Part shown: positions 4,072 to 51,020 of the stretch, one piece after another
How positions within the stretch are numbered: position 1 is the stretch's first letter
Layout of the letters: every line of letters starts with the position of its first letter
Virus record (IMG/VR): IMGVR_UViG_3300027759_000045
Coordinates: 1 to 64,000 of that record
Reading direction: 5' to 3' (one strand)
DNA length: 64,000 nucleotides
Translations under genes and position numbers: made by a program
Notes under the pieces: model-generated
What the model was told of the DNA's origin: nothing
What the model saw: only the letters and a program-made list of their open reading frames with translations
Databases searched by the model: none

Positions 4072-4803
4072 ATGAAAGTTTATATCGGCGACTATCGACA
4101 CCATTGGTTCAGTCCATACACTTGGTTTGATTACATGTTTTTCTGGACTGACTGGTCAAAGTGTGCTCGAGACAAGAGCCTAGACCACGTCATCGATGAG
4201 ATGGAGGGCAAATACAAGTACGTGGATCGTCCCGACTGGGTAGAAAAATGGACAGACCGCCTTGAGCCTGTTAGCCGAGGTATCATGTGGGTGCTGGATC
4301 GTGTGCATCCTAAAATTGACTATGTGAAGATTGACAAATGGGACACCTGGAGCATGGATCATACCTTGGCTCTGATTGTGTTGCCCATGCTGAAGCAACT
4401 GCAAGCAACCAAACATGGCGCACCCAATGTGGATGACGAAGATGTGCCTGAAGGTGTTGGTCTACGTAGTACCGAAGCAGGCGCCAAAGAAAACGAATGG
4501 GACACAGACGAAAACTGGCACAAGCGGTGGGACTGGGCCCTGAAAGAAATGATCTTTGCGTTTGAGTGCAAAGTGGACGATTCATGGGAAGAAGCTTTCC
4601 GTTCCGGAGTAATGGATGTGATAACTGTTCCTGTGGATAAGGATGGCAACGAAGTGCCCAAAGGTGAACACAAATATTGGCAAATGAAAGACGGTCCTAA
4701 AAATACCTACAAATGCGATTACGAAGGCATGCGAGTGGTAGAAGCTCGTATCCAAAACGGATTCCGCTTGTTTGGCAAGTACTACCAGGCCCTTTGGGAT
4801 TGA
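4072..4803 (+). CDS. Hypothetical phage protein
   Basis: 243 aa ORF, AAGGA SD, C-terminal GFRLFGKYYQALWD. Confidence 0.7.
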   Translation: MKVYIGDYRHHWFSPYTWFDYMFFWTDWSKCARDKSLDHVIDEMEGKYKYVDRPDWVEKWTDRLEPVSRGIMWVLDRVHPKIDYVKIDKWDTWSMDHTLALIVLPMLKQLQATKHGAPNVDDEDVPEGVGLRSTEAGAKENEWDTDENWHKRWDWALKEMIFAFECKVDDSWEEAFRSGVMDVITVPVDKDGNEVPKGEHKYWQMKDGPKNTYKCDYEGMRVVEARIQNGFRLFGKYYQALWD

Positions 4804-4829
4804 CACACAATAACACTTTGTGTTATAAT
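4800..4829 (+). promoter_or_regulatory. Sigma70-type promoter with overlapping palindrome
   Basis: TTGACA-18nt-TATAAT; ataacac-ttt-gtgttat inverted repeat. Confidence 0.65.
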
Positions 4830-4855
4830 TGGTGACCCTAACTACGATAGTGTCG

Positions 4856-5107
4856 ATGTTTGATTCAATGATCCGTGAACTGCTTACACAACAGACTCCC
4901 AAAGCAGTCAGTACACCAGTGGCGCCCGACGCTTATGCTGAATGGAAAAAACTCTACACCTTCGAAGGCTTAAAAAGTCAACGTTACGGTCAGAGTTTTT
5001 GCAATCACTTTGGTATTCAAGATCATAGAATATACTATGAACCGGACTGGTCTCGCTGTGACGAAATAATACAGCGTGACTGGATAATTAAACTACATAC
5101 AGAATGA
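4856..5107 (+). CDS. Hypothetical protein
   Basis: ORF coupled to the next gene; start uncertain. Confidence 0.55.
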   Translation: MFDSMIRELLTQQTPKAVSTPVAPDAYAEWKKLYTFEGLKSQRYGQSFCNHFGIQDHRIYYEPDWSRCDEIIQRDWIIKLHTE

Positions 5108-6343: not shown

Positions 6344-7037
6344 CTGCCTGGATGTATATCAATTCGGGACTGTGGATCGCATCAGTCCCGAAGCTCCTGT
6401 GCCTGTGTTTGTGGCAGGTCACACAGAACAACGTGCCGGAATGGCCGGCAATGTGAAGAATAACTTAGAATCACTGGGTTGTGACGTGGATTTTCTTTTT
6501 GATGGAATATCAAAAAAGACCCGACTGATTGACAGTCGTAGCAAGCAACAGATTGTACGCATTGATAACGATATGGCTTGTAAGTTCGTCGCTGTTGATT
6601 ACAATGCACTGTATTATGATGCTGTTGTGGTCAGCGACTACAACAAAGGCACAGTCAGCTATGAGATCATTGAGAAACTACGCCGAGAGTTTTCAGGTCC
6701 TATTTTTGTTGACACAAAGAAAACTGACCTGGCTAGACTGGAAGGTTGTATTGTAAAAATCAATCAACTTGAACACAGTCGCATCACCAGTACCTGCACA
6801 GATTTAATTGTGACGCTGGGCGACCAAGGCGCACGATGGAATGGAATTCATTTTACATCTAAACGTGTGGAGGTTGCAGACGTATGCGGTGCTGGCGATA
6901 CTTTTTTGGCCGCATTGGCCTACAAGTATCTGGTTGAAAACAGCATGTCACAGGCAATAAATTTTGCCATCCGAGCCAGTGCGGTAACTGTGCAACACAT
7001 TGGCAACTATGCCCCCACGTCAAAGGAAATAGCATGA
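6294..7037 (+). CDS. PfkB-family heptose-7-phosphate kinase (HldA/RfaE domain I-like)
   Basis: LVGD..LDVY, RISPEAPVPV, SDYNKG, DVCGAGDTF; start probably GTG 6294. Confidence 0.85.
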   Translation: MTTQPPTPLRILLVGDNCLDVYQFGTVDRISPEAPVPVFVAGHTEQRAGMAGNVKNNLESLGCDVDFLFDGISKKTRLIDSRSKQQIVRIDNDMACKFVAVDYNALYYDAVVVSDYNKGTVSYEIIEKLRREFSGPIFVDTKKTDLARLEGCIVKINQLEHSRITSTCTDLIVTLGDQGARWNGIHFTSKRVEVADVCGAGDTFLAALAYKYLVENSMSQAINFAIRASAVTVQHIGNYAPTSKEIA

Positions 7038-7681
7038 ATATATGCGTGATCGGTGGTGGTGGCGCTGTTGGCAAATTTGGAAGAGACTTTTGTGATCGTG
7101 CTCGACAAGACGGGCACAATGTGTATGTGTTAAGCCATCGTCCCAGTGCAGAAAACAACAGTCAGCACACCTGGGCAAACTTTGATGTAGTAACAGATGT
7201 AGTTACTGCGTTTGAACAACTCACAGCAGATCTTGATCACATTGATATTTTTGTATACAACTCCAAGCCACGACAGGAGTTTCCAGGACAACCCGAAGAT
7301 TTTGTGTCAAACAGCCGTGGCAATCCTTGGCTATGGCATAAAACCATTGACGGACATGCAGTACTGCCACACCTGTTGAGCATTGCGGCCTTGAAAAAAA
7401 TGTCCGACCGTAGCAAATTGGTTTTTTTGGTGTCAGGACTGGCAACCAATTTTGATCGAGACTACTACACTCAGTTAGTTGGGTATTCCACTGGCAAAGC
7501 GGCCCAGGCTTTTCTCATGCTGGCTTTTGCCAATCACAATGACCGTGGTGCCATATCCACAGCAGTGTCTCCGCATTTTGACAATCCAGACACTTATGAA
7601 AATATATTTGACAATACCTATCGATATATACTGACTATAGATCACGAACAAAATGGAAAAATTAAAAATTTTCACCTCTAA
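7034..7681 (+). CDS. SDR-like Rossmann oxidoreductase
   Basis: VIGGGG..GKFG glycine-rich loop; YSTGK (YxxxK). Confidence 0.6.
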   Translation: MNICVIGGGGAVGKFGRDFCDRARQDGHNVYVLSHRPSAENNSQHTWANFDVVTDVVTAFEQLTADLDHIDIFVYNSKPRQEFPGQPEDFVSNSRGNPWLWHKTIDGHAVLPHLLSIAALKKMSDRSKLVFLVSGLATNFDRDYYTQLVGYSTGKAAQAFLMLAFANHNDRGAISTAVSPHFDNPDTYENIFDNTYRYILTIDHEQNGKIKNFHL

Positions 7682-7683
7682 TT

Positions 7684-8451
7684 ATGAAAATACTACTCAC
7701 AGGTTATAAAGGCTTTATCGGCAGTCACATGTTTCGAGCATTAGAAACACAGGGGCATGATGTTTCTGTGTACGACTGGGGCGAGATACTGCCTAGCATA
7801 ATGGAACAGGATTGGGTCATCCACATGGGTGCTATCAGTTCAACCACTGAGCGTGATGTAGAAAAGGTCATGCAACAAAATGTTGACTTTACTCTGCAAT
7901 TGTATGAAGCATGCCATACGTTTGGTGTAAACTTCCAGTATTCTAGTTCAGCCAGCGTGTATGGATTGGTCAGTACATTCCGTGAAGATGCTGAACTGGA
8001 TCCACGCACTCCGTATGCTTGGAGCAAGTATTTGACCGAGCGTTATATACAAAGACATCCAATGGGTGCAAGAGCACAGATATTTCGTTACTTCAATGTG
8101 TGCGGACCCGAAGGTGAAGAACACAAAGGCAAGCAGGCCAGCCCGTATGCACAGTTCAAACGGCAAGCAGAACAAACTGGCAAAATCACTGTGTTCGAAG
8201 GCAGTGATAAGTTTTTACGTGACTTTGTGCCTGTGAGTAAAATTGTCGAAACACACTTGAAATTCTTAACAGTAAAAGAAAGCGGTGTATGGAATGTGGG
8301 CACGGGCCAGCCAAGAAGTTTTATGGACGTGGCCAAAGAGTTCAACGTTCCCATCTCAACCATTCCCATGCCGGACATCTTGAAAGACTCATATCAAAAG
8401 TACACCTGTGCTGACATGACCCGATACAACACTACCCTAAGTCGACTATGA
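7684..8451 (+). CDS. hldD: ADP-L-glycero-D-manno-heptose 6-epimerase-like protein
   Basis: TGYKGFIG, GAISSTTE, YSSSASVYG, YAWSK, FRYFNV, EEHKG, YQKYTCAD. Confidence 0.85.
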   Translation: MKILLTGYKGFIGSHMFRALETQGHDVSVYDWGEILPSIMEQDWVIHMGAISSTTERDVEKVMQQNVDFTLQLYEACHTFGVNFQYSSSASVYGLVSTFREDAELDPRTPYAWSKYLTERYIQRHPMGARAQIFRYFNVCGPEGEEHKGKQASPYAQFKRQAEQTGKITVFEGSDKFLRDFVPVSKIVETHLKFLTVKESGVWNVGTGQPRSFMDVAKEFNVPISTIPMPDILKDSYQKYTCADMTRYNTTLSRL

Positions 8452-8867
8452 AATCACTGTACTTCGCCTATGGCGCCAACATGCACCCAACCTCAATGAA
8501 AATGCGTTGCCCGGCGGCAGTTCCGTTGTGCCAATTCAATTTGCTAGATTGGAAATTGGAGTTTTATAACCATGCCACCATTGTGCCTCAAGCCGGTTGC
8601 TATGTACCGGGTGTGCTGTGGGAAATCACTGAAGATTGTGAATACGCATTGGATGCGTACGAAGGTTATCCTGCATACTATACCAAACGTGATTGGTATC
8701 AAGGCGATACAGATTTTTTCTTTTATGAAATGGCTCCTAGTAACAGGTCTGGAGCACCTGGCAGCAGTTATGTTGCCAACATTGCTGACAGTTATAGATA
8801 CTGGAATATATCCAGTAACGTGTTAAAGGCTGTGACATATGAAAACTACGCTGACCAAGCGGTCTAA
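8448..8867 (+). CDS. Gamma-glutamylcyclotransferase (AIG2-like)
   Basis: YFAYGAN, GVLW, LDAYEGYP. Confidence 0.8.
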   Translation: MKSLYFAYGANMHPTSMKMRCPAAVPLCQFNLLDWKLEFYNHATIVPQAGCYVPGVLWEITEDCEYALDAYEGYPAYYTKRDWYQGDTDFFFYEMAPSNRSGAPGSSYVANIADSYRYWNISSNVLKAVTYENYADQAV

Positions 8868-9097: not shown

Positions 9098-9126
9098 TTG
9101 ACAAATAATAAGAAGTTTGCTATACT
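9098..9126 (+). promoter_or_regulatory. Sigma70-type early promoter
   Basis: ggTTGACA-17nt-TATACT. Confidence 0.75.
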
Positions 9127-9152: not shown

Positions 9153-9368
9153 ATGCCATCCATTAACGGACTTACATATTACCAAAAAGACCTGCTTGAC
9201 TGCATGTGGGAAATTGATACTCCTGAGGAATTTCAAGAATGGTACCTTAATCTCGACCACTACGATCAGAAAGAAGTAGACCTGTTAAAATTGATGCTGG
9301 TGTATGATCTACTGGATGAAGTGTACAATCTTGACCAAGCCCGTGAAGTGATTGATCGAGTAAAATGA
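9153..9368 (+). CDS. Hypothetical early protein
   Basis: AAGGTG SD before MPSINGL. Confidence 0.6.
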   Translation: MPSINGLTYYQKDLLDCMWEIDTPEEFQEWYLNLDHYDQKEVDLLKLMLVYDLLDEVYNLDQAREVIDRVK

Positions 9369-9697
9369 ACCATCAATTTGTAATCATGTGGGACTGCAAC
9401 GGTCTTGAATACATTGGCGACATCACAGCAGACGATCAACGAATGATTGTGGAAAGCCTTCGAGGCAACAACAGTCCACGTCGTGCGTTGGCCAATCCGC
9501 ACCATCTGCGACTTAGAGCACAGTTCAATCCACAACGCCACTACGAGATTTACATTGTGGAAGCCACTGACGGCATCACAGAGGCGGATATCCGTGACAT
9601 GTTTGAAGCGTCACCACAAACAGCCGCTGACACCATACGTGAACTTGGTACTGTGTTTTACAGTGACCGTGCCACCCAAAAAGCGGCAATTGTCTAA
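9365..9697 (+). CDS. Hypothetical early protein
   Basis: Coupled ORF; MWDCNGLE, RAQFNPQRHYEIY. Confidence 0.65.
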   Translation: MNHQFVIMWDCNGLEYIGDITADDQRMIVESLRGNNSPRRALANPHHLRLRAQFNPQRHYEIYIVEATDGITEADIRDMFEASPQTAADTIRELGTVFYSDRATQKAAIV

Positions 9698-9722: not shown

Positions 9723-9751
9723 TTGACGAATAAGACAATCCGTTATATAAT
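9723..9751 (+). promoter_or_regulatory. Sigma70-type promoter
   Basis: ggTTGACG-17nt-TATAAT. Confidence 0.75.
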
Positions 9752-9826
9752 ACACACATAGTTTAAATAGTTTAGACTATGTTTTATTAACCAATCCCGC
9801 ATTGTGTCGGGTAAAGAAGGAAGATT

Positions 9827-10879
9827 ATGGCACAGAAACGACTTACACGTAAACTCACGGACGTCATTGCCGAAGTTGAAACACAACTCAAAGCACATTA
9901 CGGCGTCACACAAAAAGAACTTGACGCTTGGCGGGCCCGAGCAAAAGCTCTATCACATAAATTCCCTATCAGTTCAATGATCCAAATCGAGGATCTATGG
10001 ATTGACTACGAAGTTCAACGAGATGTGCTACACAAGCACATTATCAACATCATGCGAAAATGGGATCCACGCATCTGCTCCCCCGGTTCTGCCTGTCGCT
10101 TTGGTGGAAAGCCTCCAATCTATCTGTATGACGCACAACATCGCACTATTGCCGCAGGTATTTTAGGCTTTACAGAAATCCCGTGTGCTGTGGTAGAAAC
10201 AGACGACCCTAACTTTGCTAGCTACGCATTTGAAATGCTCAACGATACAGGCGTTAAACGTCTTACACCCGGTGACCTCCATCGTAATGCCTTGGTGCGT
10301 TACAAGAACGGCAGTCCAGATGTTAAGGTAGCTCGTGCTCGCAAAATGCAAGATCAATTTGATTCCGCTGGCATTGACCTTCAAGACAAAGGTTCTCGTA
10401 ACAGCGACAACCTACGTGGTGATAACGACTACTTCTTCAGTCACTTTAAGTATGCACAAAAAGGAATCGAAGTAGATGAGAAGGGTAAAGTTTTGTTTGA
10501 AATCTTAAATTCTATTAAAATAGCCTTTCCGTTGCAAGAAGAAATTGATCAAGGTGTTTACATTGGACTTTTAGAATTGCACAAGTTGAGCCGTGCAGAA
10601 ACTACCGCATTACCAAATCAATGGATAATTGAATTACTAAATGTAGTTAAGAAAACATTCAAGAGCTCTGGGTTAATACATGCCAAAGCCAAAGTGCAAT
10701 GGGAACATGTGAACCCAGGCGGCACCTGGACTGCTCCTACTGCTATGAGCAACTTTATGCGGGAGTTGTATATTCGCAACGGTGGCACCAAATTAAACTT
10801 GCCCTATCACGGAGAAGGCGCTAAAATGGGTATTACTGAAGGCAATGTTGCCCCAGGTTTATTCCCAGAGGAGAATTGA
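9827..10879 (+). CDS. ParB/Srx-fold DGQHR-like protein
   Basis: IDYEVQRD and LYDAQHRT motifs, then F..LN. Confidence 0.65.
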   Translation: MAQKRLTRKLTDVIAEVETQLKAHYGVTQKELDAWRARAKALSHKFPISSMIQIEDLWIDYEVQRDVLHKHIINIMRKWDPRICSPGSACRFGGKPPIYLYDAQHRTIAAGILGFTEIPCAVVETDDPNFASYAFEMLNDTGVKRLTPGDLHRNALVRYKNGSPDVKVARARKMQDQFDSAGIDLQDKGSRNSDNLRGDNDYFFSHFKYAQKGIEVDEKGKVLFEILNSIKIAFPLQEEIDQGVYIGLLELHKLSRAETTALPNQWIIELLNVVKKTFKSSGLIHAKAKVQWEHVNPGGTWTAPTAMSNFMRELYIRNGGTKLNLPYHGEGAKMGITEGNVAPGLFPEEN

Positions 10880-10880
10880 A

Positions 10881-11393
10881 ATGAGTCACTTTCTTTATAT
10901 ACACAAGGACATGTCCAATGTTGCCGGCGTTTGGAAAGTAGGAGTGGCAATGACCCCTTACTCTGCGGTACGGGCACGACAAAAATTTTGTTGGAACAAA
11001 TTCCATCTTGACTATCTTTATTTTGGATTACCCGGGCATGTTAAGTCGTTGGAAAAAACTATCAAATATAGATTCAACCATCTTACTGGTAAACAGGCAC
11101 AGGGCACCAGTGCCAACACAGAAATGATCAAAATAGATATTGAGATTTTGCTAAAAGAAATTAAAGAGATAATCGAAGAACATGATCTCAAAATTCATCA
11201 ATTGGAATTGGCCGATCCGTATAGCGCCGCTAAAAGTGGTGATTGTCCGTTTGGGATTCCTTCGGAAGTATATGCCGTTGCCTGGTTGCAACGCAAAGCA
11301 AAACATTTCTTTAAAACAGAAGATCTTGAATACCCTCGAAAAATCAAACTCAACGCTAGAACAATGTTTAATGAATTGTTTGCAGTATGTTAA
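10881..11393 (+). CDS. GIY-YIG/T5orf172-like nuclease-domain protein
   Basis: FLYI...WKVG...R..Q...LEK.I pattern; GAGGAG SD. Confidence 0.5.
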   Translation: MSHFLYIHKDMSNVAGVWKVGVAMTPYSAVRARQKFCWNKFHLDYLYFGLPGHVKSLEKTIKYRFNHLTGKQAQGTSANTEMIKIDIEILLKEIKEIIEEHDLKIHQLELADPYSAAKSGDCPFGIPSEVYAVAWLQRKAKHFFKTEDLEYPRKIKLNARTMFNELFAVC

Positions 11394-11947
11394 AAGAATC
11401 TTTAGATAATTTTACTGCACCTGTGTATGGTAAGACCAAGCGCAGTGCCGAAACTTACCGGACTGTGGCAAAGCATTGCCGTACTCATCTTGAACGGTTG
11501 GTTAGTGAATATCAAACAGTTAAGAATGACCAACAATGGTTGCGTGAAATTCGCAACGACATTGATTACTATCTGCGCCGTTATCATGAATACTGTATCC
11601 AACAACGTGATGGAATGAAAGCACACTATCATGAAGTTGGTGCAGACGACGACTGTGACTTTGAACACCTGATTCCGGCCAGTCGTATTCGTGACCTGTT
11701 GTTGGCCAGTGCTGTCACAGTTGAGCAGGCATTAAATGCTCCAACTGTGAGATTGAGCCGTGCCAAACACATGGCATTAAAAGATGCTGGGTGGGCGGCC
11801 AAGACTCCGGACATGTGGCTACCATTTAAACGCTACACCAACGTATTTGAGGCCACGTATCAAACGCACGATGGCACGGAAATAGATCCAGAAACTTGGA
11901 CTTTGGAACGGCATTTTGACTATTTTAAGCACTTGGTTATAGGGTAA
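11387..11947 (+). CDS. Putative HNH/His-Me finger-like protein
   Basis: DFEHLIP motif followed by N..T..L...KH. Confidence 0.45.
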   Translation: MLKESLDNFTAPVYGKTKRSAETYRTVAKHCRTHLERLVSEYQTVKNDQQWLREIRNDIDYYLRRYHEYCIQQRDGMKAHYHEVGADDDCDFEHLIPASRIRDLLLASAVTVEQALNAPTVRLSRAKHMALKDAGWAAKTPDMWLPFKRYTNVFEATYQTHDGTEIDPETWTLERHFDYFKHLVIG

Positions 11948-11974: not shown

Positions 11975-12006
11975 CGGTTGACCAATTATTGCCATTTTGC
12001 TATAAT
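11975..12006 (+). promoter_or_regulatory. Sigma70 promoter, copy 1 of a 32-bp repeat
   Basis: cggTTGACCaattattgccattttgcTATAAT. Confidence 0.8.
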
Positions 12007-12215: not shown

Positions 12216-12247
12216 CGGTTGACCAATTATTCCCAATTTGCTATAAT
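12216..12247 (+). promoter_or_regulatory. Sigma70 promoter, copy 2 of a 32-bp repeat
   Basis: cggTTGACCaattattcccaatttgcTATAAT, 30/32 identical to copy 1. Confidence 0.8.
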
Positions 12248-12558: not shown

Positions 12559-12792
12559 ATGATGCACAAAAACGTACAAAAACTTATCAATGATTATCAG
12601 ACAATTCTGGACCGAGATCCCTTGGATCAGATGGAAGACACGCAGAGCATTCTCGCTCGCTTTGCTCAACAGTTGGCCACCGAGCTAGGTGAAATCGTAG
12701 TAGCAAGTCCGTTCAATGAAGGTACTCGCATGTACTTTGACGAGAAGATTGCTCGCTACGAAATTAAAAAGAGTGTGGGTTTGGTTGACTAA
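12559..12792 (+). CDS. Hypothetical protein
   Basis: ORF immediately after the previous stop. Confidence 0.55.
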   Translation: MMHKNVQKLINDYQTILDRDPLDQMEDTQSILARFAQQLATELGEIVVASPFNEGTRMYFDEKIARYEIKKSVGLVD

Positions 12793-12813
12793 CAAATCCC
12801 CGTTTGCTACAAT
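12785..12813 (+). promoter_or_regulatory. Sigma70-type promoter
   Basis: ggTTGACT-17nt-TACAAT. Confidence 0.7.
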
Positions 12814-48731: not shown

Positions 48732-51020
48732 ATGCAAAATAATCCTGAAATTGAAAAAATTGTCAACAATGCTGTGGCCATTGCAAAAGCTCACAATCAT
48801 GCTTATGTGATAACCGAACATGTACTGATGGCAATGATTCAACACGCACCATTTCGAGCATTGTTGGTGAAATATGGCACAGCCGTTGAACAGTTCGAAG
48901 GCGAACTAAGTGCATATATTCTAGCGCAGGTTAGTTTAATAACCAGCAAAGAAGATGTTACACCTCGCAAAACCAATGGCCTTGAGCGCATGTTTAATCG
49001 TGCGCTGACACAGGTACTGTTTACCGGACGCAGATCAATCACATTGCTGGATCTGTACCTGGCCATGATGGCAGAAAATAACAGCCATGCACATTACTTT
49101 TTGTTGAAGTATGGCGTTCACAAAACTGAATTTGCTGAGTTCTATCAGAAAAATCATGCCTCTGCCTCTAAAGAGTTGAGCAATGAAACTGCAAACGAAA
49201 TCCTGGATCAACACTGTACAAATCTAAGCAAACGAGCTGCCGACGGACAATTAGAACCCATGATCGGCCGGGCCGCAGAACTGGAAGAAATGATCACTGT
49301 GTTGGCTCGCAAGTTCAAGGCCAACGTGCTGATGGTGGGCGATCCTGGTGTGGGCAAAACTGCCATCATTGACGGACTAGCACAGGAGATCAACGCTGGC
49401 CGTGTTCCAGAGTTTCTTAAAGGTTCTGAAGTTTGGGGATTAGAGATTGGTTCGCTGTTGGCTGGCAGCAAATACCGTGGTGAGTTTGAAGAAAAGTTCA
49501 AAGACGTTATCTCTGCACTGGAAACTAAAAAGAACTGTGTGCTGTTTATCGACGAAGCGCACACCATGATGGGCGCAGGAACTTCGGGATCAAGCAGTTT
49601 AGACTTTGCCAACATGATCAAACCAGCAATTACCAAGGGCAACATCAAGGTAATTGCGAGTACCACATGGGAAGAATACTACGAGAGCTTTGAAAAAGAT
49701 CGTGCGCTGATGCGCAGATTCCACAGAGTCAATATTGGTGAGCCTGATTCAGCCACCACAGAGCAAATTCTAATTGGCATTAGCCCGCGTCTAGAAACAT
49801 TCCACAATGTACTGATTGACACAGAAGCAATGACAGCGGCTGTGGAATTGAGTGGACGCTACATTCATGATCGTAAGAATCCTGACAAGTCAATCGACCT
49901 GTTGGATGGCGCCTGTGCTGGAGAGCGTGTGAAAGACCTGGGCACAGTTACCATCAACCGTGACATGATCATGGCGCAACTCAGTCGTGTTACCGGAGTT
50001 CCTTTAGATAGATTGCAAAACGAACGCAGTACCAAGGTTACCGAGCTGGAAGGTAACATCAAGCAGTTCTTATACGGGCAAGACCAAGCCATTGACACTG
50101 TGCTAGAACGTATCTACATCAACTTCTCCGGCATTGGCAATGCTAAAAAGCCTGTGGCCAGTTTCTTGTTCCTGGGTCCAACCGGCACAGGTAAAACAGA
50201 ACTGGCCAAACTGCTGTCGCAAAATCTAGACATGCACCTGTTGAAATATGACATGAGTGAGTTCCAAGAGAAGCACAGCATTGCCAGTTTGATTGGTGCC
50301 CCTCCTGGATACGTGGGCTTTGATGACGGCAACGTGGGCGGCGGCAAGTTGATCAGCGACATTTCCAAGCACCCGTTCAGTATCCTGTTGTTTGACGAAA
50401 TTGAAAAGGCACACCCAGATGTGGTCAACATCATGTTGCAGATGCTGGATGAAGCCCGGATCACTGGCAGCAGTGGCAAGTCAGTGGATGTCAAGAACTG
50501 TATCATTATTATGACCAGTAACCTAGGTGCCAGAGACAATGAAAACAACAACATCGGCTTTGGTCAGTCGTTAGAAAAGACCGGCGAAGAAGACCGTGCT
50601 ATGAAAGAGTTCTTCAAGCCGGAACTGCGCAATCGCATTGACAAGGTGTGCAAATTCAACAAGTTAGACAAGCTAGCCATCAAGAAGATTGTGGTCAAGT
50701 TCACAGCAGAGTTACAAGAAACACTGTTGAACAAGAACATTCGTCTTACATTTGCTGAAGATGTGATCGACATGCTGGCAGACAAAGGCTACGATCCCAA
50801 GATGGGTGCTCGTCCATTGGGTCGCAAGATTGACGAACTGATCCGTGTACCACTTAGTAAGCGTATCTTGTTTGATCAAATTGCTGACTGTGCAATTCAT
50901 GCCAGTATGGTCAATGATACAGTGGAATTCACAACCACATCATTGCTGACTGTGCCTGGCCCAGGCGTCAACGACGAAGGATACATTGTAATTGATCAAT
51001 TTACACCCAACATTCAATAA
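48732..51020 (+). CDS. clpA: ClpA-like ATP-dependent chaperone
   Basis: Two AAA+ modules (GDPGVGKT, GPTGTGKT), KYRGEFEE, IGF loop, no ClpB middle domain. Confidence 0.88.
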   Translation: MQNNPEIEKIVNNAVAIAKAHNHAYVITEHVLMAMIQHAPFRALLVKYGTAVEQFEGELSAYILAQVSLITSKEDVTPRKTNGLERMFNRALTQVLFTGRRSITLLDLYLAMMAENNSHAHYFLLKYGVHKTEFAEFYQKNHASASKELSNETANEILDQHCTNLSKRAADGQLEPMIGRAAELEEMITVLARKFKANVLMVGDPGVGKTAIIDGLAQEINAGRVPEFLKGSEVWGLEIGSLLAGSKYRGEFEEKFKDVISALETKKNCVLFIDEAHTMMGAGTSGSSSLDFANMIKPAITKGNIKVIASTTWEEYYESFEKDRALMRRFHRVNIGEPDSATTEQILIGISPRLETFHNVLIDTEAMTAAVELSGRYIHDRKNPDKSIDLLDGACAGERVKDLGTVTINRDMIMAQLSRVTGVPLDRLQNERSTKVTELEGNIKQFLYGQDQAIDTVLERIYINFSGIGNAKKPVASFLFLGPTGTGKTELAKLLSQNLDMHLLKYDMSEFQEKHSIASLIGAPPGYVGFDDGNVGGGKLISDISKHPFSILLFDEIEKAHPDVVNIMLQMLDEARITGSSGKSVDVKNCIIIMTSNLGARDNENNNIGFGQSLEKTGEEDRAMKEFFKPELRNRIDKVCKFNKLDKLAIKKIVVKFTAELQETLLNKNIRLTFAEDVIDMLADKGYDPKMGARPLGRKIDELIRVPLSKRILFDQIADCAIHASMVNDTVEFTTTSLLTVPGPGVNDEGYIVIDQFTPNIQ

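Follow-up and report, generated by a model that had tools for sequence, protein, structure and literature searches.

Organization of the g1-g3 locus

The locus described here was found at positions 9723 to 11947 of a 64,000-nucleotide stretch of DNA (hereafter, the window), which is the first 64 kb of the 346,856-bp IMG/VR virus record IMGVR_UViG_3300027759_000045. This record has direct terminal repeats and is rated 100% complete, and the GC content of the window is approximately 44%. Three genes of the locus, designated g1, g2, and g3, are tightly packed on the plus strand. g1 (9827-10879) encodes a 350-amino acid protein of the ParB/Srx fold and DGQHR type, which is a putative nucleotide triphosphate (NTP)-binding and DNA-binding protein structurally similar to DUF6551 proteins. 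g2 (10881-11393; 170 amino acids) encodes a T5orf172/MUG113 (GIY-YIG clan)-like protein of the free-standing homing-endonuclease type, and it occupies the spacer between g1 and g3. g3 (11387-11947; 186 amino acids) belongs to an unnamed family, and its product is predicted to consist of an N-terminal helical hairpin and a putative zinc-less His-Me (HNH-like) core carrying E93-H94. The analyses below show that g1 and g3 form a conserved module into which g2 has been inserted.

A sigma-70-like promoter (TTGACG, 17 nt, TATAAT) was identified by consensus match only at 9723-9751 on the plus strand, 76 nt before the initiation codon of g1, and the ribosome-binding site of g1 is AAGAAGGAAG. g2 was listed as an open reading frame (ORF) at 10845-11393, and its likely start is the ATG at 10881, which lies behind GAGGAG and one base past the g1 stop codon. 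The first 7 nt of g3 are shared with the end of g2. On its downstream side, the unit is bounded by the next plus-strand sigma-70-like promoter, at 11978-12006 (TTGACC, 17 nt, TATAAT); no plus-strand terminator was found after g3. Each of the two promoters agrees with the consensus at 11 of 12 positions. The layout given in a preliminary description of this DNA, that is, three tightly packed genes with their own sigma-70 promoter bounded by the next promoter, was therefore confirmed. The motifs that it had listed were also all present, namely VQRD and YDAQHR in g1 (within DYEVQRDV and YLYDAQHRT) and DFEHLIP in g3 (within CDFEHLIPAS). In total, 12 promoter-like sites were counted between 8800 and 13000 against 7.8 ± 3.3 in shuffled sequences, which is unremarkable; the five top sites are all on the plus strand, and those at 9723 and 11978 directly precede gene starts.

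When a large protein collection was searched at E ≤ 1e-3, 1073, 88, and 963 homologues of g1, g2, and g3, respectively, were obtained, and the three are therefore real genes and not chance ORFs. All of them are unnamed and lack a precomputed Pfam domain. A lake metatranscriptome (run X14) contained contigs identical to parts of g1 (9808-9983 and 10069-10412) and to the g1/g2 junction (10813-10968), which may derive from carried-over DNA; g3 was covered by none.

Linkage of g1 and g3

Seventy-four related loci were taken from IMG/VR, and g1, g2, g3, and their neighbors were placed on each of them. The linkage counts are based on the 63 distinct loci that have enough sequence upstream of g3. g1 was located directly upstream of g3 in 57 of these loci, and the conservation of g1 and g3 as neighbors, which the preliminary description had put forward for examination, is thus borne out. 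The pairing was kept down to approximately 45% identity. In a 349-kb relative (L058), the pair was present with identities of 46% (g1) and 43% (g3) and a gap of approximately 80 nt. In another locus (L059), a 401-amino acid gene is located directly upstream of a g3 with 37% identity and overlaps its start by ATGA. This gene carries MQRE and WDGQHT; it was not recognized as g1 by tblastn, and hhalign of its first motif region to g1 gave an E value of 0.016. On the downstream side of g3, more than 30 gene families turn over freely across 65 loci, and the upstream neighbors of the module are only partly conserved.

The identities of g1 and g3 to the window genes co-varied (Pearson 0.76, Spearman 0.47, n = 57), a description only, given that the loci are interrelated. 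The identities of the module were also compared with those of the ClpA-like protease encoded in the window (48732-51020) in the genomes G006 and G009 (L021, L058). The ClpA-like protease was 72% identical where g1 and g3 were 46% and 43% identical, and it was 54% identical where g1 and g3 were 72% and 81% identical. The divergence of g1-g3 is thus uncoupled from that of the genome backbone, which suggests that the module has been exchanged between phage lineages as a block. It is apparent from these results that g1 and g3 constitute a conserved two-gene module.

Two recurrent neighbors of the module were noted. The commonest occupant of the position after g3, present in eight loci (L017, L019, L022, L024, L027, L049, L050, and L063), is a 382-amino acid gene with an SPPY motif and a weak match to a DNA-methyltransferase PHROG (for example, L017:4560-5708), and the gene after g3 at L018:4721-5455 encodes a clear N6_N4 methyltransferase. 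The other is a 110-amino acid ORF (9365-9697 in the window) with no family match, which accompanies the g1-g3 pair on changing sides. It lies just upstream of the pair in the window and in L058 (2483-2794), and downstream of g3 in L059 (5570-5911), L072 (4947-5285), and several others. It is approximately 50% identical in the two most divergent modules, being better kept there than g1 or g3. The product of this ORF could be a third partner, perhaps an inhibitor or immunity protein, or the ORF could merely be a conserved neighbor.

The slot between g1 and g3

The spacer between g1 and g3 was empty in 16 loci, with a gap of 4-19 nt in 15 of them and 79 nt in one. It was occupied in 40 loci with gaps of 353-563 nt, and one further locus had a gap of 103 nt. 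Each longer gap contains one plus-strand gene, and these genes fall into at least four unrelated families, three of which are endonuclease-like. The most frequent family, seen in 28 of the first 54 loci, is of the endonuclease VII/HNH type (phrog_3322, E = 1.4e-24; phrog_1035, E = 8.7e-19). The second is the T5orf172/MUG113-like family of g2, which matches phrog_681; the third matches phrog_1111 "endonuclease"; and the fourth gave no match.

g2 itself matched phrog_681 "endonuclease" with an E value of 6.8e-5, and its homologue in L008 (46% identity) matched phrog_681 (E = 4.9e-9) and MUG113 (E = 3.4e-4). The Pfam bit scores of the L008 homologue were 21.6 for MUG113 (cut-off 22.3) and 16.8 for T5orf172 (cut-off 20), and neither of these models (PF13455 and PF10544) matched g2 of the window. 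The nearest feature neighbors of g2 in the ESM Atlas were T5orf172/MUG113 proteins, with scores of 0.93-0.94.

Only three further loci contained a homologue of g2. One of the three, L062, has its g2-type T5orf172-like gene (4555-5067; 49% identity) right after g3 and not between g1 and g3, indicating that this mobile gene family has no fewer than two intergenic insertion sites around the module. Among five near-complete relatives (93-100% complete), all of which have both g1 and g3, none has g2. Furthermore, both alleles were present in a single lake metagenome, in which one contig carries g2 and another leaves the window sequence at 10883 and rejoins it at 11393, that is, at the borders of g2. 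The distribution of g2 is thus that of a homing gene: sporadic, at a fixed site, and with empty and alternative alleles. As judged from this distribution, g2 is not part of the module but a mobile gene of the free-standing homing-endonuclease type that has entered the spacer between g1 and g3, and the pattern of the slot as a whole is that expected of free-standing homing endonuclease genes competing for one intergenic site. The preliminary description had proposed a three-gene cassette, and this has to be given up because g2 is dispensable and interchangeable. It had also regarded the middle gene as either a partner or an inserted homing nuclease. The latter was the correct choice, whereas a role as partner is contradicted by its absence from the five near-complete relatives and by the variability of the slot.

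g2 resembles the seg and mob genes of T4-like phages and the T5orf172-type genes in being small, endonuclease-like, precisely inserted, sporadic, and in alternation with other genes. It differs from them in that it scores under the curated cut-offs for T5orf172/MUG113 and is a putative homing gene, as judged from its distribution. The g1-g3 spacer provides a clean natural case of small, mostly endonuclease-like mobile genes competing for one site.

The ParB/Srx fold of g1

The structure of the g1 product was predicted with a mean predicted local distance difference test (pLDDT) score of 79.6. In a Foldseek search of the PDB, the top 50 matches were all ParB, Noc, KorB, Srx, SerK, or their relatives (best E = 3.5e-3), and BrxU was not among the nearest structures, which were Srx, ParB, and KorB. 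The match to the ParB/Srx fold covers residues 45-165, and the alignments run into the helix-turn-helix region of ParB, Noc, and KorB. The whole protein resembled phage DUF6551/ParB_N clusters with template-modelling (TM) scores of 0.58-0.67 and a feature score of 0.97, DUF6551 being annotated in 11-57% of the cluster members. No match to the DUF6551 (PF20188) or ParB_N model was obtained for g1. Moreover, neither g1 nor its relative in L058 (46% identity) gave any match in Pfam at E ≤ 1, in NCBIfam at E ≤ 5, or in PADLOC, and a profile search of the PDB sequences with the g1 alignment returned chance matches only. Among the PHROGs, there was a weak ParB-like match (E = 1.1e-3).

Three motifs are invariant in 30 g1 homologues, which have a mean column identity of 68%: Q64-R65, D102-A-Q-H-R106 with Ala in place of Gly, and F135-E-M-L-N139. 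A QR pair, a DGQ(Q/H)R pentapeptide, and FxxxN are the signature of DGQHR domains and GmrS (Machnicka et al., PMC4619093). On the basis of the predicted model and these motifs, g1 has the ParB/Srx fold with a DGQHR-type triad, in agreement with the preliminary description. It also has a helical C-terminal domain and may bind nucleotide triphosphate and DNA. Two phage ParB-fold/DUF6551 fusions bound nucleotide in vitro, one CTP and the other ATP (bioRxiv 10.1101/2025.10.10.680097).

A reference alignment of GmrSD was prepared from 24 genuine proteins from Bacteroidota genomes. When g1 was aligned with its DUF262 half by hhalign, a probability of 29% and an E value of 5.7e-4 were obtained, and the alignment runs through "FEMLNDTGVKRLTPGDLHRN" of g1 against "vFEtlNarGvkLs.aDLlKN" of DUF262. 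Controls with mismatched halves gave probabilities of 0.5% or less and E values of 0.11-0.37. A stretch of approximately 100 residues that lies between DGQQR and FExLN in DUF262 is missing in g1.

The putative His-Me core of g3

An exhaustive search for relatives of g3 yielded 118 representatives, the more distant of which are approximately 25% identical. The genomic context of these distant relatives is limited to contigs of 0.9-2.4 kb. As judged from homology searches, g3 founds an unnamed family of approximately 1000 proteins. In an alignment of 64 sequences, Y81, H94, R149, Y150, and H176 were invariant, and R64, E93, P97, P119, and L131 were almost invariant. Asp, His, or Asn occurs at position 128; N117 is not conserved, and there is no conserved cysteine. 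A Pfam scan of the 64 relatives detected no nuclease family and no consistent family, and PF07510 (DUF1524/GmrSD_C) was not matched by any of them at E ≤ 0.1. g3 itself gave no match to PF07510 and nothing meaningful in PADLOC or NCBIfam.

The predicted model of g3 (pLDDT 96.8; predicted TM score 0.90) has a helical hairpin at residues 21-72, a strand at 81-83, a strand at 90-94 that ends in E93-H94, two short helices, a strand at 120-124, and a helix at 125-133. The nearly invariant E93 and the invariant H94 at the end of a strand, together with Asp, His, or Asn 34 residues further on in a helix, correspond to a His-Me layout.

Structure searches with this model gave the following results. 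Foldseek detected no match at E ≤ 0.001 in the PDB or BFVD; the best BFVD match (E = 0.028) was an unnamed cyanophage protein. On a second look, the PDB matches were mostly helical bundles that had aligned with the N-terminal hairpin. In a shape search of the ESM Atlas, PF26848 (Phage_T5_Nicking_endo) was found over residues 53-157 with a TM score of 0.54, and an HNH cluster was found with a TM score of 0.37. For the core of g3 (residues 53-157), SciA of phage T5 (9qgv/9qgx) ranked first structurally in the PDB as well as in the ESM Atlas. Among the AFDB clusters, the model matched uncharacterized proteins of bacteria, the best with an E value of 6.7e-5, and entries named "HNH endonuclease" (E = 8.8e-4). 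The named language-model neighbors of g3 were GH-E, GmrSD_C, HNH, and ICEA, all of which are His-Me families; their scores of 0.72-0.75 were taken as a lead only.

Profile comparisons were in keeping with this picture at a low level. hhalign of g3 with T5 SciA was not significant (probability 0.1%); its single segment places H94 on His42 of SciA, the residue that is mutated in the 9qgx crystal. With the DUF1524 half of GmrSD, a weak alignment over 54 columns was obtained (probability 5%, E = 0.008), in which EHxIP is placed on EHIlP, the strand TVRLS on LTLL, and position 128 on the conserved Asn. As a yardstick, two bona fide HNH families aligned with each other gave a probability of only 0.4%. 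A profile search of the PDB sequences with the g3 alignment returned chance matches only. No single line is decisive, but several weak and independent lines agree, and g3 is therefore most likely to have a zinc-less His-Me (HNH-like) core built on its invariant Glu-His pair. The preliminary description had called g3 HNH-like, with an EHxxP motif, and this assignment is retained in that form.

Comparison with known systems

In g1-g3, as in GmrSD, BrxU, and SspE (DUF262 + DUF1524), a ParB/Srx-fold NTPase-type domain that carries the QR, DG(A)Q(Q/H)R, and FxxxN motifs goes together with a His-Me nuclease of the (E/D)HxxP type, which in the case of g3 is a putative one. The order is also the same, from the N to the C terminus in those proteins and from 5' to 3' in g1-g3, and g1 has the QR, pentapeptide, and FxxxN motifs of GmrSD with Ala for Gly. 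On the other hand, no DUF262, DGQHR/DndB, or DUF1524 model matched g1 or g3, and g1 has no long insert between DGQQR and FExLN. g3 is half the size of GmrD and begins with a helical hairpin, and the N-N positions of the E/D-H-N-N arrangement are not conserved in it. Furthermore, GmrSD is found in bacterial defense islands, whereas g1-g3 is a conserved module of lytic-type jumbo phages. By these sequence comparisons, the pair would be GmrSD-like in its layout but not a member of the family. The GmrSD/SspE-type assignment in the preliminary description therefore stands in part: the weak in-register profile matches to both halves are in its favor, whereas membership of the family is not supported, there being no DUF262, DndB, or DUF1524 match and the nearest structures being those of Srx, ParB, KorB, and SciA. 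A split GmrSD had also been presented as an undescribed system; however, the first description of GmrS and GmrD was already one of two proteins (PMC4619093), and a split GmrS/GmrD is in itself not new.

SciA of T5 is T5.153 (PF26848), as identified by its match to 9qgv/9qgx. It is a small phage enzyme of the HNH type, as g3 is predicted to be, and in both of them a helix comes right behind the His that is, or in g3 would be, catalytic. It has CxxC...C zinc ligands (C28, C29, C32, and C90) and an HH pair, whereas g3 lacks those cysteines and would use EH, and no significant sequence similarity exists between the two. In addition, sciA of T5 is a gene of the late morphogenesis region, with head genes around it and the large terminase gene two genes away. 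g1-g3, unlike T5 sciA, is preceded by a promoter of the sigma-70 type and has small, variable genes as its neighbors. Nicking genetics of T5 has defined two genes, sciA and sciB (PMC3517423). SciB had been considered as a parallel to g1, that is, as a ParB-like partner, and this idea was dropped because a ParB_N search of T5 gave no match.

With the phage DUF6551/ParB_N proteins and with ParB, Noc, and KorB, g1 has in common the fold of residues 45-165 and the shape of the whole protein. Its third motif resembles that of DUF262 (FExLNxxGxxLxxxDLxxN) and not the ENxxR box of ParB, and, in contrast to ParB systems, g1 is not accompanied by a ParA and gives no hint of acting in segregation. ParB-fold domains fused to HNH domains recur in bacteria (bioRxiv 10.1101/2025.10.10.680097).

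Neighboring genes and the source phage

Near-consensus sigma-70 promoters were found at 9098-9126, 9723-9751, 11978-12006, 12219-12247, and 12785-12813, before almost every small plus-strand gene group. They are mostly of the form TTGAC-N17-TATAAT, and several have the TG of an extended -10 sequence. This set is consistent with an early region that would be transcribed by the host polymerase, and with a host whose main sigma factor may read E. coli-type promoters. Upstream of the locus (7034-8867) are enzyme genes for a short-chain-dehydrogenase-like protein (215 amino acids), a nucleotide-sugar epimerase that matches phrog_540 (E = 8e-55), and a protein resembling gamma-glutamyl cyclotransferase/AIG2 that matches phrog_2520 (E = 2e-20). 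Of these, the cyclotransferase-like gene was seen again beside the module in L049 and L040/L058. No Pfam match was obtained for the small neighboring genes.

Many metagenomes of lakes and fresh water, dating from 2017 to 2025, contained DNA nearly identical to the window. On the other hand, nucleotide and protein searches of a collection of 50,697 phage records with the cassette, g1, and g3 gave no match, and the ClpA-like protease of the window is 39% identical to a protein of PA5oct-type Pseudomonas jumbo phages. The window therefore represents an uncultured jumbo-phage lineage, and the carriers of g1-g3 are a clade of freshwater (lake) jumbo phages of approximately 320-360 kb.

Among 185,579 species genomes, the sole match was L079:4001-5558 (NZ_JBBAKG010000036.1), on a 62.5-kb contig in a bin of a Haliscomenobacter sp. 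metagenome-assembled genome. There, g1 is matched only over residues 1-320 and g3 only over residues 23-186, with 103 nt between them, an arrangement that looks like a deletion across the g1-g3 junction. The contig is probably a phage contig within a bacterial bin. Haliscomenobacter was rejected as the host because TTGACA/TATAAT-type promoters fit it poorly and the binning of phage contigs is unreliable.

Possible functions of the module

The reading that we prefer, to which we give roughly an even chance, is that g1 and g3 constitute a two-part, nucleotide-gated DNA nickase or endonuclease with a GmrSD-like layout, g2 being a mobile insert. g1 would bind nucleotide triphosphate and DNA and would provide nucleotide-dependent DNA engagement or gating. 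g3 would nick or cut DNA, in which His94 would serve as the general base and residue 128 would bind the metal. Both proteins would cooperate, with labor divided as in GmrSD/BrxU-type enzymes, and would be built from more distant members of the respective families. Candidate substrates are host DNA, the DNA of competing phages, and, by analogy with the nickase of T5, particular sites in the genome of the phage itself. The genome contains no N6/N4 methyltransferase, ThyA-family, or TGT gene. There is thus no sign of self-protection, by the usual routes of DNA modification, from a nuclease acting on plain DNA, which mildly favors a modified target or site-specific action on its own DNA.

Several observations weigh against a two-part enzyme. 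No recognizable g1 was present within 4 kb of g3 in L018, L046, L048, L049/L050, L053, and L055, which leaves five or six loci of this type if L018, L046, L048, L049, L055, and arguably L059 are counted, and a g1 profile detected nothing in five partial g1-less contigs carrying g3, which are 16-35% complete where completeness was estimated. In loci of this kind, g3 is often preceded by a small HNH gene, and the absence of g1 coincides with a methyltransferase-like gene after g3 in L018 and L049/L050. g3 may accordingly act alone or with other partners in some phages. In addition, the close conservation of g1 is unusual for genes engaged in an arms race and points to a housekeeping DNA transaction rather than to warfare. 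Finally, a structure prediction for the g1-g3 complex gave no answer (score 0.00) and was used neither for nor against the reading.

A doubtful but serious alternative is that the pair is a true split GmrSD/SspE-type Type IV enzyme, with g1 as GmrS (DUF262) and g3 as GmrD (DUF1524), which would be modification-dependent and directed at competing phages whose DNA is modified, or at the host. The DGQHR-type triad of g1 and the EHxxP motif of g3 would be expected of such an enzyme, as would their in-register hhalign alignments to the DUF262 and DUF1524 halves, which exceeded the mismatched controls, and the presence of GmrSD_C among the nearest named Atlas feature neighbors of g3. A nuclease for modified DNA would also spare a genome with none of the modification genes mentioned above, and GmrS and GmrD can be separate proteins (PMC4619093). 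However, no match to DUF262, DndB, DUF1524, PADLOC, or NCBIfam was obtained, even when the 64 relatives of g3 were included, and g1 lacks the stretch of approximately 100 residues of DUF262. Moreover, the best structure for g3 is T5 SciA and not GmrSD, the N-N positions are not conserved among its relatives, and the pair has the character of a well-conserved, core-like module within a phage clade rather than of a defense-island gene.

It is unlikely, though conceivable, that the nicking is self-directed, with g3 as a SciA-like site-specific nickase serving replication, recombination, or packaging of the phage's own DNA and with g1 loading g3 or restricting it to its sites. ParB-type proteins recognize specific DNA sites, and the high conservation of the pair would suit a housekeeping role. 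The two genes named by T5 nicking genetics, sciA and sciB (PMC3517423), would offer a precedent for a second component. Yet the likeness to SciA is weak and structural only, with the hhalign probability of 0.1% noted above, and g3 is without the zinc-binding cysteines. T5 has no ParB_N-type gene, so that no g1-like second gene is apparent in it, and its sciA lies among late head genes, in contrast to a module that follows a promoter of the sigma-70 type and is surrounded by small, variable genes.

We consider it quite unlikely that g1 and g3 are mere neighbors, g1 being a ParB/KorB-like DNA-binding switch for genome organization or transcription and g3 being non-catalytic or unrelated, with a Glu-His pair of structural significance. 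The closest solved structures to g1 do include the CTP-dependent clamps ParB, Noc, and KorB, into the helix-turn-helix region; the complex prediction, used neither way, returned no interface; and g3 occurs without g1 in a few loci, all evidence for its nuclease nature being weak. Against this, adjacency, translational coupling, and co-divergence persist amid turnover on the downstream side and only partial conservation upstream, E93/H94 with Asp, His, or Asn at position 128 form a His-Me layout, and ParB-fold-HNH fusions recur in bacteria. A three-gene system with g2 as a required partner, suggested by the tight packing of three genes behind one promoter here, is highly improbable and was rejected, since it is contradicted by the distribution of g2: missing from all five near-complete relatives that keep g1 and g3, replaced by nothing in 16 loci and by unrelated genes in most others, located after g3 in L062, and present and absent in the same lake sample.

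Within the preferred reading of a two-part, nucleotide-gated enzyme, one specific form, of rather low probability, may tentatively be proposed, in which the pair would be a phage enzyme of a new kind. A ParB-type CTP/ATP switch would load on or slide along DNA and license a minimal zinc-less HNH nickase, which would make programmed nicks in the phage's own genome or destroy rival or host DNA. If this is true, the g3 family would be a new His-Me branch linking the T5 nickase and the nuclease domain of GmrSD.

New here are the g3 family, which is widespread and unnamed, its constant association in jumbo phages with a ParB-fold protein of the DGQHR type, and a hot spot of mobile genes between the two. 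The combination of a ParB/Srx nucleotide switch and a His-Me nuclease recurs in GmrSD, BrxU, and SspE in bacterial defense and in uncharacterized ParB-HNH fusions, and the control of the nuclease by the switch is poorly understood. Two small, separately encoded, and well-conserved phage proteins with approximately 1000 natural variants would offer a compact system in which to dissect this coupling. For the abundant uncultured jumbo phages of lakes, the pair could explain a DNA transaction such as programmed nicking, host DNA breakdown, or the exclusion of rivals.

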